Source: Podarcis melisellensis (lineage: Eukaryota). Taken from it: 64,000 bases of DNA. A program made the translations under genes and the position numbers. The notes under the pieces are model-generated. The model saw only the letters and a program-made list of their open reading frames with translations, searched no databases and was not told where the DNA came from. Shown here one piece after another: positions 6,424 to 41,164 of the stretch. Numbering within the stretch: the first letter of the stretch is position 1; each line of letters begins with the position of its first letter. The stretch lies in the NCBI GenBank assembly GCA_964234715.1, contig OZ174275.1. One strand, written 5' to 3'.

Positions 6424-6789
6424 TATTCAGAATTCTGGGAAAGCAAGAAACGGTTCCATGACACAGTGCTGAGCTGGCCATTCTGTGACTTTTGCTAAGA
6501 TGAGACCTAGCAGGACAAGACTGCATGATCCTATCAGTGATAGCGGGCTGGGAAGCATGGCCATCACTCACAATGCGGGGGTGCCCAGACGCTCATGCCG
6601 TTTTCACAGAGCAAAATCATTTTCACTGAGCTGAGTCCATCCAAAAACATGTGCAATAATTAAATTATCTTTTTTTTAAAAAAATAATCACTGCATCTTC
6701 TGCACATTCAGTATGCATTATCCAATCATGTGTACCAACTATTAAGATACACAGGATATCAAATAATTAATATCAAGTATGAAACAGTA

Positions 6790-7010
6790 CCTTTATCAAG
6801 ATGGAATAGAGTCTCTGGAGACTCATGTGGCTCAAACACTACAAGTTTTAGGGGAGCTGCAAAGACTGTTTTATTTTGCCAGGTCTTGTGCCTGTTAGTT
6901 TTATTTAATTGCTTCTCACTGTTGTTGTTTTGTATTTTATTGGTTTTTAAATTGCAAACCACTTTGAAGGCTTTTTGGTGGGAAAACAAATATTAAATAT
7001 TAATAAAAAG
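6790..7010 (+). mobile_element. Degenerate L2-like LINE 3' end
   Basis: T-rich 3'UTR ending TTGCAAACCACTTTGAAGGC...AATAAA, typical of squamate L2 tails. Confidence 0.35.
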
Positions 7011-7250
7011 GAAATGCTGAAAGCAAAATGTGGGGTTTATATATTATATATTGAACCGCAAATAGCCATTGGATACCTGACAAAAGGATTCACAAGAACA
7101 TATTTGCATGGAAATGGAGCGGCCATCAACTGCTTTATTTAATATATGGAGAATGCACACTATGATCACATGGAATAGGTATCATGAGAAGTATCATAAG
7201 AAGAGAGACTTTTCTGTGCTGTACAACCATATGCTAGATAACATCTAAGG

Positions 7251-8375
7251 CAGTGTTTCCCAACCAGTGTTCCGCGGCACACTAGTGTGCCGCGAGACGT
7301 TGCCTGGTGTGCCGTGGGAGGGAGGCGGGCGAGTCGGGCGGCGAGAGGCCTTAGGCGCCCTGCAGAAAGGCGTCCTCTTTGTGGGTGGGTTCTCCCCCCT
7401 CCCTTAGCGCATCGTATTTAGTTGGGGATTCTGGAGAGGGGGGCGGGGGCGCGCTGGCCCCGAGCGGAACAGACGCGCCGTCGTCCCCACCTCCCTCTCC
7501 TCAGTAGCTCCGAGCCGACTGACTGAGGGTGGGACGCGGCCAGCGGCGTCCTCTCTCTCTCCGCCTCCCAGCACCGCTTTTCCCGAGGCGGGCGCGCGCC
7601 TAAGGCTGAATGGGAGCAGCCTGGAGGCTTGGCGGCCTCTCAGCGGCTCATGATGGGCGTCCCCGAGGCGGGAGGTGCTGAGCAGGGGCTCTGCGAGAGG
7701 GCGCGAGGGATGCGTGGTGGTGCCTGCGCGCGTGACTTAAGAGGGCGACCTGCTGCCTCTCCTCTCTCTCCCCTCCCTCCCCTCATGGGCACGGAGTCCC
7801 CGGCACAGCTTGGCGCTACTACAGCTACAGCTGCTGCTGCTCCTGCTTGGATGAAGGCGGCTGCTTCTTCCTAACGCCCAGCCTCTGAGGGACCGCAGTC
7901 TCCTGCCCTTTTTTTTTTTTGGGGCGGGATGCTGAGGTAAAGGATCCCCTCGAGCGCGCGCGGGCATCTCTTTGGGCAGGGCGCGTGTGGAGGCTTAAGG
8001 TGGGGAGTGTGGAGGGGTTGCCGCTTGCGAGGGGAGGGTTCATATTGTATTGGGCTGCGGTGTGGGCGACACGGCTCTCCAATGGCCAGCCCGCGGAGGA
8101 ACATTGAGTTGGAGCATTTCGAGGAGAGGGACAAAAGGCGCACTGAATAAAGTATTTTATAATTTTTCATATTTCTGTTTACTTACTATTTCATAATAAA
8201 GTAATTATAAAATACTTTCTTTGTGTTTATTTGATTCCTATTAAAGAGAGTTACTTTATATATAGTCAATATAGGCACAGAGTTAATTTTTTAAACATTT
8301 TCTAATGGTGGTGTGCCTCGAGATTTTTTTCATGAAACAAGTGTGCCTTTGCCCAAAAAAGGTTGGGAAACACTG
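7251..8375. mobile_element. Non-autonomous hAT transposon carrying captured host sequence (Pack-TIR-like)
   Basis: Perfect 15-bp TIR CAGTGTTTCCCAACC/GGTTGGGAAACACTG; perfect 8-bp TSD ATCTAAGG (7243-7250, 8376-8383); GTGTGCC subterminal repeats at both ends; GC/CpG-rich interior ~7320-8140. Confidence 0.95.
8082..8150 (+). pseudogene. DCLK2: Captured fragment of DCLK2 exon 1 (start codon plus ~19 codons) inside the hAT element
   Basis: Translates MASPRRNIELEHFEERDKRRTE*; recalled human DCLK2 N-terminus is MASTRSIELEHFEERDKRPRPG (12-residue identity IELEHFEERDKR); the last codons and stop appear to come from transposon-end sequence. Confidence 0.8.
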
Positions 8376-10057
8376 ATCTAAGGAACATGGCACTATGTTT
8401 GCATTTCCTGGAATCATCCTTCCTTCTGCCACATTGGGCATCTTCCTACTTACGTCCCTTACACCTATTTTATAAACCTTATGTTATCAACCATTTGTTC
8501 AGTGCCTTTACAATACAGCCAGTGTAATTCACTGAGAGAATTCAGTTCATTTAAGAACTCGCTGTTAAGAGTTGCATTTCTTTCCTCTCCTAACTCTCAC
8601 TTTCATTCTGTTTTTCCTGCTGCAATTCTTTCCCCACTTCTACCTATATTTTTTCCCCCTGTTCATATCCTGAGAAGCAATGAAATAATTAACATTCACA
8701 AGAAAGTACCATGATCGGATGTTAGACATCCGTGTTACAATAATAGAACAGGGGAGATAACTATAATTTTGCTTGGAAATGTTTTCAAAGTGTCTCCGGC
8801 CAACATCACTTTATAGCTCTACATTCAAATTTTTGACCAGGATCATTAAAGAGGATATAGCTAATGAAGACTTAATGCCTTGAGAACTTACTCTCATCCC
8901 TTCCTCTGATGTGGTCTAAGGTGAGATCTAGGGAAGCAAAATGCTTCTGACAAATAGGAGATTGCTCTGTTTTCTCCTCATCATCAGTCAGTGATAGAGT
9001 ATCACAAAGCACTGGGTTGCAAGAGATGGTGAAGGGGTCAGCATCCTCTCTAGCCAATGAAGAGACTCACATTAATTGAACTGAAGGTGAAATGATGGGA
9101 AAGATGCTTGCATCTCCTTTGCCAATGTCCACCCACCCTGGTCTTCCAGAATCCTTAATTTATTCTTTTCCCCACTCTAAGGAGAATTAATGAGGCTTGA
9201 TTTACAATTAATTCCCTGAACTGATTCTCAGTGTAAAACAAACTTATTTGGAAGTGACATCAACTGCAGACATAAACAACTAACCACTCTCAAACTTGCC
9301 TTTTTTTGGTGGGGCGGGTGTGTGTGACAGAAGGCATGAAGTTGAAACAGAAAATTAAATTTGAATACAGCATCATATATTTCACAATGCATTCCTTCTC
9401 AGTGGATAAGCCATGACAACATTGATTGTGTCTTTTCAGTCTCCTTTTCTTTGGCTCATTCCCTGGACGCTAACCATGCTATAAAAGGCACTGGGTGTAT
9501 TAGTTTCATGTGTGTGAATCTCGGATAATACATTCCAACCATAGCTTCTGACTTTTAAAAGTTCCATAGCCACGAAGTATCTCTCCTTCACACCTCTGCA
9601 ATATGAGGATACCACATGTTGGCTTTTATTCCATGGTGGGTACCATTGTCTCCTATGCAAGGATCATGAGGTAAGTACAGTACTCAGGGTTCAGAAAGGG
9701 GGCTCCATGTTGGCCACAACACTAGGTTCTGGCACACAGGCACCAACACAGCTGCATTGCTTGGAGTATTCTGTTGACTATCTGTGTGAGAGCATTGTTC
9801 CCACAGTGCAGCCGTAAAGGACCACAATGCTGGGCAGGACCACATGAACAGTCCACCCCGCAGGAGCCGCATGAACTGCTCTGAGCTCTATGGAGTGGAA
9901 GCAGCGGGAAATGTAGCACAATAATGCGTTGTGATTAAAATGATGCCTATTCGCATACTTTTGCTTAAGCTTGCGTGCATTTGTCTGGTCGCCAGTTAAA
10001 CTGGAATCTCCTGCCCCCAATATGATATCTGCTGTTATCCTAGCACCAGATTCCTTG

Positions 10058-16081: not shown

Positions 16082-16210
16082 NNNNNNNNNNNNNNNNNNN
16101 NNNNNNNNNNNNNNNNNNNNNNNNNNNNNNNNNNNNNNNNNNNNNNNNNNNNNNNNNNNNNNNNNNNNNNNNNNNNNNNNNNNNNNNNNNNNNNNNNNNN
16201 NNNNNNNNNN
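16082..16210. other. Assembly gap (N run)
   Basis: Ns. Confidence 1.
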
Positions 16211-22472: not shown

Positions 22473-22980
22473 CTTTGGCCATCACTCATAGCCCAGTAAG
22501 ATTGTCTTCCATAACCATGGTCTTAACAGTGAGTCTTTAAGTAACTGTGGAGGCCAATTCTGGATCCACATGTCCTTCCACAGTGGGGACATAGGTTTCT
22601 AGGCTGGAGCTGAACACAGTGAAGGTTTGCCAGATGTGCCTTCCTCTTAGCACGTTTCTCCTTTTTGTCCTGAGTTAGAGTGTCTTCAAAGTCCATGACA
22701 CCTTTGGTAAAGGCTGTTCTCCAATTGGAGTGCTCGCAGGCCAGTGTTTCCCAATTGTTGGTGTTTATACTACATTTTTTTAGATTTGCCTTGAGTGAGT
22801 CTTTAAACCTCTTTTGTTGACAGCTAGCATTATGCTTTCCATTTTTAAGTTTGGAATAGAGTAGTTGCTTTGGAAGACGATAATCAGGCATCTGAACAAC
22901 ATGACCAGACAAAGTTGATTTTGAAGAATCATTGCTTTGACACTGGTGATCTTTGCTTCTTCTTCCACTAGTACACTAAC
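22473..22980 (-). mobile_element. RTE-clade LINE 3' fragment (degenerate)
   Basis: ORF ...GHVVQMPDYRLPKQLLYSKL...WETLA...CPHCGRTCGSRIGLHSYLKTH: RTE C-terminus with a degenerate C2H2 finger. Confidence 0.88.
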
Positions 22981-40492: not shown

Positions 40493-40666
40493 NNNNNNNN
40501 NNNNNNNNNNNNNNNNNNNNNNNNNNNNNNNNNNNNNNNNNNNNNNNNNNNNNNNNNNNNNNNNNNNNNNNNNNNNNNNNNNNNNNNNNNNNNNNNNNNN
40601 NNNNNNNNNNNNNNNNNNNNNNNNNNNNNNNNNNNNNNNNNNNNNNNNNNNNNNNNNNNNNNNNNN
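40493..40666. other. Assembly gap (N run)
   Basis: Ns. Confidence 1.
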
Positions 40667-40821
40667 ATTTTCTCAGTTTTTACTATCGCAGGAATTTTAC
40701 TAGTCGCAGGAAAAGTAGATTTCTGTCCAGTCTCTATCCTTAGTTATTTTGTTGACATTGCCTCTTGCCTGTTCCGCTGATTTTCACACAAAAGCAGAAC
40801 ATGTAATATCTTCATCTAAAC

Positions 40822-41154
40822 CAGGGGTCTGCAACCCGCGGCTCCGGAGCCGCATGTGGCTCTTTTACACCTTTGCTGCGGCTCCGGGCAGATACTAGCA
40901 AGGGGAGGAGGCGCATTGTGCGCCCCAACACTCCCCACTGTGGCGGGTGCTGTACTGGCTGTGACGTCACATGGGGGCGGTGCGTGCGTTAGTCACTCAC
41001 CGTCCCGACGTCATCTTCCCGCCCGCTGTCAGATCGCGGCTCCGGAGATATATTTGTTGTAAATGTCGCAATGGTTTTGCGGCTCCCAGATTTTTTTTTT
41101 CCTTCGGAAACGGGTCCAAGTGGCTCTTTTTATCTTAAAGGCTGCAGACCCCTG
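40822..41154. mobile_element. Non-autonomous hAT element with a GC-rich promoter-like interior
   Basis: TIR CAGGGGTCTGCA/TGCAGACCCCTG; perfect 8-bp TSD ATCTAAAC; GCGGCTCC subterminal repeats. Confidence 0.93.
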
Positions 41155-41164
41155 ATCTAAACCT

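Follow-up and report, generated by a model that had tools for sequence, protein, structure and literature searches.

The element at positions 7251-8375 of the window (the whole stretch of DNA analysed, 64 kb long) probably belongs to a cargo-bearing subfamily, itself multicopy, of a nonautonomous hAT transposon that is very abundant, the cargo having come from the 5′ end of a host gene, most likely DCLK2. An earlier note on this DNA had described the element as mobile together with its cargo, and this is what the contigs of related genomes show: the site is empty in two relatives, and the junction between cargo and transposon is multicopy in three species.

The comparative evidence comes from public reads in the form of Logan contigs (k = 31), aligned to positions 6600-9000 of the window. 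The runs are X1 (organism A, which may be the source sample), X5 (organism B), X12 (organism G), and X15 (organism H), the last having an assembly of transcriptome size and bearing only the label "RNA?". Copy numbers are expressed as the k-mer depth of contigs relative to that of the unique flank, and contig depth is not in itself a copy number.

Anatomy of the Element and of Its Cargo-Free Relatives

The element is 1125 bp long and is delimited by perfect 15-bp TIRs, CAGTGTTTCCCAACC on the left and its exact reverse complement on the right, and by a perfect 8-bp TSD, ATCTAAGG, that abuts both ends, exactly as first described. The TIR 15-mer occurs in its exact form at only two places in the 64-kb window, which are the two ends of the element. 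A near-TIR at 22742 (two mismatches) was considered as another copy and rejected, the sequence beyond 13 matching bases being unrelated. Hallmarks of hAT transposons are an 8-bp TSD and short TIRs (~10-25 bp) that start with CAG or TAG. The present element has an 8-bp TSD and a 15-bp TIR starting with CAG, and it belongs to a repeated family with presence and absence of copies among relatives. The target sites of these transposons reportedly follow the pattern nnnTAnnn in the Buster/Charlie clade and nTnnnnAn in the Ac clade; at the one site examined, ATCTAAGG fits the former, and only the T of the latter is matched. Contigs of other copies (15 in X1, 14 in X12, and 6 in X15) align over the last seven letters of the flank (7244-7250) and then diverge, with low agreement. 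These shared letters hint at a preferred target motif like TCTAAGG.

Another hAT, which belongs to a different family, lies at 40822-41154 of the window. It has CAGGGGTCTGCAACC and CAGGGGTCTGCAGCC as TIRs (14 of 15 positions match), a TSD of ATCTAAAC on both sides (40814-41162), and a GC-rich middle that contains TGACGTCA. It adjoins a run of N at 40493-40666. The TSDs of both hATs start with ATCTAA and fit nnnTAnnn.

Between its TIRs, the element of interest has three parts (Table 1). They had been described as ~70 bp of left transposon end, ~820 bp of CpG-island-like cargo, and ~235 bp of AT-rich right end; the measured lengths are 69, 819, and 237 bp, and the division is independently confirmed by contigs of other copies that join 7319 directly to 8146. 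The middle (7320-8138) has a GC content of 0.66 and 66 CpG, with a CpG o/e of 0.75 versus 0.21-0.23 in the flanking intron. This is the composition of a typical vertebrate CpG island. The middle also ends in an ORF, as had been claimed, with codons 1-19 lying in the cargo. A Pfam search with the ORFs of the cargo gave no domain, and the element has no transposase ORF.

The boundaries of the three parts can be placed by comparison with other members of the family. All four organisms have contigs in which 7319 is linked to 8146-8149 by 10-30 AT-rich letters (AAAATTGAAAAATTCGAAAGATTT...), so that the present copy has 819-826 bp where canonical copies have a linker of 10-30 nt. These joints show that the boundaries between arms and cargo had been drawn correctly. 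Loose contig ends at 8138 in X5 and X15 reveal other elements that have sequence in common with this one from 8138/8139 onward, and because their similarity starts only there, the right boundary of the cargo lies at this position. For the left breakpoint there are two candidates, 7320 and 7350. A composite transposon made of two elements was also considered and rejected, as the cargo replaces just the ~27-nt linker and there are no internal TIRs.

The canonical, cargo-free element is a MITE of roughly 330 bp that is present in the order of 10^4 copies, as judged by k-mer depth in organisms A, B, and G. In X1, the summed depth reaches ~1,000,000 in the left arm and 500,000-950,000 in the right arm, versus 67-81 in the unique flank. 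The cargo-free MITE is abundant in the transcriptome-sized run of organism H as well. Even shorter forms exist, in which 7314 or 7316 is joined to 8353 through 7-9 letters.

Table 1. Parts of the element, exon of the host gene, and contigs that match the cargo (positions refer to the window)
Feature	Position	Strand	Basis or remarks
TSD, left copy, ATCTAAGG	7243..7250	.	At the 7242->8376 joint of the B and G contigs, 8 letters can be placed on either side
Left hAT arm, 69 bp	7251..7319	+	TIR 7251-7265; GTGTGCC subterminal motifs at 7285 and 7307; the canonical joint departs at 7319
GC-rich stretch, 30 bp	7320..7349	+	Common to a much larger subfamily; loose contig ends at 7349
Core cargo, 789 bp, presumed host 5′ gene end	7350..8138	+	GC 0.65; CpG o/e 0.73; without counterpart in the canonical element
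Short ORF, MASPRRNIELEHFEERDKRRTE, then stop	8082..8150	+	Codons 1-19 are cargo; codons 20-22 and the stop are transposon arm
Right hAT arm, 237 bp	8139..8375	+	GC 0.27; TIR 8361-8375; composition, motifs, contig depth
Right-arm motifs	within 8139..8375	+	AATAAA at 8146 and 8195; 19-nt hairpin 8146-8164/8203-8221; GTGTGCC at 8311 and 8341
TSD, right copy, ATCTAAGG	8376..8383	.	Sequence and empty-site contigs
VSX2-like homeodomain exon, then gtaa	13554..13676	-	Pfam Homeodomain, E 4e-12
Contig, X1 (A), record 6	7986-8166		0 differences; depth 6785 vs flank 67-81; about 90x
Contig, X1 (A), record 5	7618-7732		1 difference; depth 3636 vs flank 67-81; about 48x
Contig, X5 (B), record 29	8065-8156		0 differences; depth 193 vs flank 12.1; about 16x
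Contigs, X5 (B), records 25, 26, 28			0-5 differences; depth 191-206 vs flank 12.1; about 16x
Contig, X5 (B), record 25	7306-7561		Depth 191
Contig, X12 (G), record 15	7985-8139		0 differences; depth 2266 vs flank 72; about 31x
Contig, X12 (G), record 13	7551-7908		2 differences; depth 754 vs flank 72; about 10x

An Insertion Specific to One Lineage

The earlier note had proposed a search for the empty site in relatives, and this site is found in organisms B and G, which carry a single ATCTAAGG without the element. One contig of 2743 bp in organism B and one of 2726 bp in organism G skip from 7242 to 8376, each with more than 600 bp of flank aligned on either side. The gap is 1133 bp in both, that is, the element plus one TSD, the 8 letters of which fit on either side. 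In organism A (X1), contigs run from the flank into the TIRs at both ends (7163-7273 and 8357-9000) with 0 differences, and no contig of this organism skips from 7242 to 8376. Hence, the insertion is real, precise, and lineage-specific. Since hATs usually leave footprints when they excise, it is far less likely that the element was lost precisely from two species. The insertion occurred in the lineage of this genome after its split from the two sampled relatives.

The element lies in a gene of the minus strand, ~5.2 kb downstream of the third coding exon and inside the following intron, and its ORF is antisense to this gene. Upstream of the homeodomain exon, further exon motifs are found in the expected order at ~18493 and ~19979, also on the minus strand, and we take the three motifs to be exons 1-3 of VSX2 (CHX10). 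Exon 4 (WFQNRR/CVC) is absent from the 64-kb window, which makes intron 3 longer than 13.5 kb. The location first given, intron 3 of VSX2, is borne out by the position downstream of the homeodomain exon of a minus-strand gene, the identity of which as VSX2 is our presumption. Intron 2 of this VSX2-like gene contains a run of N at 16082-16210.

Copies of the Chimera in Other Species

Contigs of the core cargo in organisms A, B, and G have 10-90 times the depth of the flank (Table 1). At position 7904, up to 19 distinct contigs with the majority letter are found in the single run X1, which makes a single-copy locus impossible. Only one (A) of the three species that have a multicopy junction between cargo and right arm has the locus occupied. 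Identical junctions are multicopy in A, B, and G. The capture is therefore older than the divergence of these three species, and the copy in the window came by transposition. The further copies that the earlier note had proposed to count are thus present, with a junction of cargo and arm at 16-90 times flank depth in three species; they are counted here by their junctions and not by the TSD of each copy. Compared with the majority of the family, the present copy has ~7 differences in the cargo (at 7654, 7725 [an additional GC], 7904, 7921-2, and 7953), those at 7654 and 7904 being changes of CpG to TpG. This copy is young, but not brand new.

The left end of the cargo is shared more widely than the rest. 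Loose contig ends at 7349 are found in 16 contigs of X1, 9 of X5, 3 of X12, and 1 of X15, which belong to a subfamily that has 7320-7349 and then continues differently (GGGGCGGCGGCGGCGAGCAC...). The bin 7329-7409 has a depth of ~90,000 in X1, and this subfamily has ~1000 copies, roughly 10-fold more than the cargo-bearing one. Since 7320-7349 is common to the larger subfamily, the history of the element is more complex than one clean capture.

Organism H provides a different type of match. A contig of 864 bp (record 21 of X15) matches 7350-7920 only, with 11 substitutions and several indels, including an 8-bp deletion at 7697, and its other 287 letters lie off the stretch and are unlike the left arm. 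It may represent the parent locus or another subfamily. This contig has a depth of 18, with a flank depth of 0, in the run labelled "RNA?", and it tells no more than that an apparent transcriptome contains some sequence resembling the cargo.

Two alternatives bear on the same contigs. The first is a single-copy Pack-TIR formed at this very site, where a gap or double-strand break in a resident hAT would have been filled from the DCLK2 locus, as in the gap-filling model of Tan et al. (2021), who ascribe most animal Pack-TIRs to this process (PMC8277862). However, organisms B and G show a clean empty site and not a cargo-free hAT, and the same junction of cargo and arm is found at ~16-90 times flank depth in three species. 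Capture on site by gap filling is contradicted by these observations, and we regard it as very improbable.

The second alternative is an assembly artefact in which a GC-rich block was misjoined into the middle of a hAT copy. In its favor, none of the Logan contigs reaches from one end of the element to the other. The breaks fall inside the repeated arms, into which the junction contigs extend by 11-28 letters, below the 31-letter bridging rule; such a short reach is expected where a k = 31 graph meets a repeat of 10^4 copies. A contig of native DCLK2 would not run on as CGCACTGAATAAAGTATT, and exact matches at the junction are therefore still specific. Against a misjoin, the X1 contigs from flank to TIR (7163-7273 and 8357-9000) and from cargo to arm (7986-8166) each have 0 differences, the same junctions appear in independent runs of other species, and the TSD is exact and matched by the empty sites. 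Misassembly is rejected on these three lines of evidence, and we give it hardly any credence. A mobile, multicopy chimera remains the preferred explanation.

Probable Host Origin of the Cargo

The attribution of the cargo to DCLK2 starts from the peptide encoded at its right end. The N-terminus of human DCLK2 presumably reads MASTRSIELEHFEERDKRPRP, in which case a run of 12 residues, IELEHFEERDKR, would be identical between DCLK2 and the ORF peptide (MAS..R.IELEHFEERDKR). The residues that resemble this presumed N-terminus stop at codon 19, that is, at the boundary between cargo and arm defined by the reads (8138). This coincidence, the position right after the ATG, and the CpG-island composition upstream make an origin from the 5′ end of DCLK2 likely, and we hold it with rather good confidence, though as a lead rather than a result. 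The captured part may be 5′UTR, and any true promoter within it is putative.

None of the database searches links the cargo to DCLK2. A phmmer search with a 30-aa stretch against 1.84 billion protein representatives gave no DCLK at E <= 0.001, the sole match being an unrelated repeat protein (P0001). The 19-residue match is estimated to score ~30-34 bits, with E near 1, and is thus below the reach of this threshold. Against PDB, which holds no DCLK N-terminus, phmmer at E <= 10 gave only an unrelated designed repeat protein. In a word-index protein search, neither the 47-aa ORF nor the 99-aa ORF of the antisense strand had matches among proteins of 0.55-1.75 times the query length, a range that leaves out full-length proteins, in a collection apparently without ORFs of lizard contigs. 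The peptide strings are absent from literature full text, and no contig of the native locus, with the cargo running on into DCLK2 coding sequence, is found among the contigs listed.

The middle could instead not be host-derived at all, but represent internal sequence of the transposon itself (e.g., a remnant of the 5′ region of a longer or autonomous parent) or another repeat, the likeness to DCLK2 being due to chance or to an incorrect DCLK2 N-terminus. Such an origin would fit with a middle that itself occurs in tens of copies in three or more species, with the sharing of its first 30 bp by a subfamily ~10-fold larger, and with database searches of which none gave DCLK2. Yet the canonical element, at ~10^4 copies, is entirely without this middle, which has the composition of a vertebrate CpG island and lacks Pfam domains, that of a transposase included. 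If the presumed N-terminus is right, an exact run of 12 residues right after the ATG, ending at the mapped boundary, is also very unlikely to arise by chance. We therefore consider an origin within the transposon unlikely and favor capture from the 5′ end of a host gene.

Proposed Route of Acquisition and Spread

Under the favored reading, the short AT-rich middle of a ~330-bp MITE would have been replaced, before the sampled species diverged, by ~790-820 bp of host DNA, namely a CpG-island-like 5′ region together with the 19 initial codons of what is most likely DCLK2. Most plausibly, this DNA would have been acquired by a template switch while a copy of the transposon was being repaired or replicated, with GGGA at 7316-7323 as a possible microhomology at the left junction. 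The chimera would then have been mobilized in trans by a hAT transposase. It retained both arms with their subterminal motifs and was amplified to tens of copies, one of which landed antisense in intron 3 of VSX2. The earlier note had implied a capture at this very element, by gap repair. The site was empty before the insertion and the same junctions occur in other species, which places the capture earlier and elsewhere; gap repair may still have given rise to the family, though not through an event at this locus.

The transposon arm supplies both the stop codon and the AATAAA at 8146. The 22-codon ORF would thus have arisen by accident at the junction, and a functional protein is unlikely to be made from it. 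Biologically, the element would most likely act as a dispersed CpG-island or promoter-like cassette and as a source of homology to the 5′ end of the parent gene. A putative "mini unit" of promoter plus poly(A) signal, antisense to VSX2, is possible. It may be asked whether the dispersed CpG islands are unmethylated and start transcripts, which here would be antisense within VSX2, and whether the parent gene is affected in turn by small RNAs directed at the copies.

The cargo described here may be one among several. Contigs that share an arm with the element (7285-7349 or 8138-8303) run into other, mostly GC-rich sequences, such as GGGGCGGCGGCGGCGAGCAC beyond 7349 and GTGACGCTGCGCGCTGACGTCACGGGGCTG ahead of 8303. 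The loose ends number 280, and the ones listed include alternative middles, mostly GC-rich, at the same arm boundaries in four organisms. Many contigs that share one arm and then diverge suggest that this hAT family has many different middles. Tentatively, and with somewhat more doubt than belief, we propose that one abundant, recently active family of lizard hAT MITEs repeatedly acquires fragments of CpG islands, promoters, and first exons and amplifies them to tens or thousands of copies. If true, the scale of repeated capture would be far above that of animal reports and comparable to that of rice Pack-MULEs, with promoter-like cassettes scattered through introns. Such a family-wide pattern of capture, rather than the single copy, would be the interesting finding.

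Comparison with Known Systems

Capture of gene fragments by cut-and-paste transposons is well established in plants, and in animals it mostly concerns single, immobile copies. The Pack-MULEs of grasses reportedly carry and amplify gene fragments, with a reported bias to GC-rich 5′ parts. Those of rice and other grasses resemble the lizard element in being TIR elements that carry and amplify fragments of host genes, but they belong to Mutator, with 9-10-bp TSDs and long TIRs, and are found in plants, whereas the lizard element is a hAT in a vertebrate. Among vertebrates, Helitrons of vespertilionid bats are said to capture promoters and first exons. They too are DNA transposons that disperse fragments of host promoters and 5′ exons in many copies, but they move by the rolling-circle mode and are without TIRs or TSDs.

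Lizard hATs with foreign DNA have also been described. In Anolis, hobo_AC and other hAT families take in "extraneous DNA", which consists for the most part of other transposons and of large pieces of the genome (Novick et al. 2011, PMC3014272). These families resemble the present one in being recently active and in having nonautonomous members with foreign DNA, but no mention is made there of fragments of promoters or first exons from named genes.

The closest systems are animal Pack-TIRs, of which 370 were found in 100 genomes, including 208 hATs (Tan et al. 2021, Nat Commun, PMC8277862). In view of these numbers, the earlier remark that such capture is rarely described in vertebrates is dated. 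The sole lizard in that survey (anoCar2), with 77 consensus TIR TEs, gave no Pack-TIR. Nearly all Pack-TIRs are single-copy, which was attributed to transposition-independent gap filling. Four of the 370 are multicopy (three in frog and one in alligator), one of them being a hAT with a 5′UTR in three copies, and a polymorphic family with four copies was reported in fly (PMC8277862). The element in the window has the features of a Pack-TIR, with nonconsensus internal sequence between intact TIRs and a TSD, and its chimeric junctions recur in multiple copies. It is most similar to Pack-hAT-N8_XT of Xenopus tropicalis (PMC8277862), which is also a nonautonomous hAT with a 5′ fragment of a host gene in its middle (the 5′UTR of CAPSL in the frog) and which has TIRs, 8-bp TSDs, spread by transposition after capture, and empty orthologous sites in relatives. 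Unlike the lizard cargo, which includes a start codon and 19 codons, the frog one is 5′UTR, and the frog element has three copies, whereas the lizard element stands at ~16 to 90 by contig depth (which is not a copy number) and occurs in several species. Hence, the element is of an already known kind, the animal Pack-hAT, and stands out by how many copies it has, by its occurrence in several species, and by having been active recently. A mobile hAT chimera of a vertebrate, with dozens of copies, in several species and with species-specific insertions, would clearly exemplify how host regulatory DNA can be spread by transposition and would offer a natural system for asking how the 5′ ends of genes are picked up.
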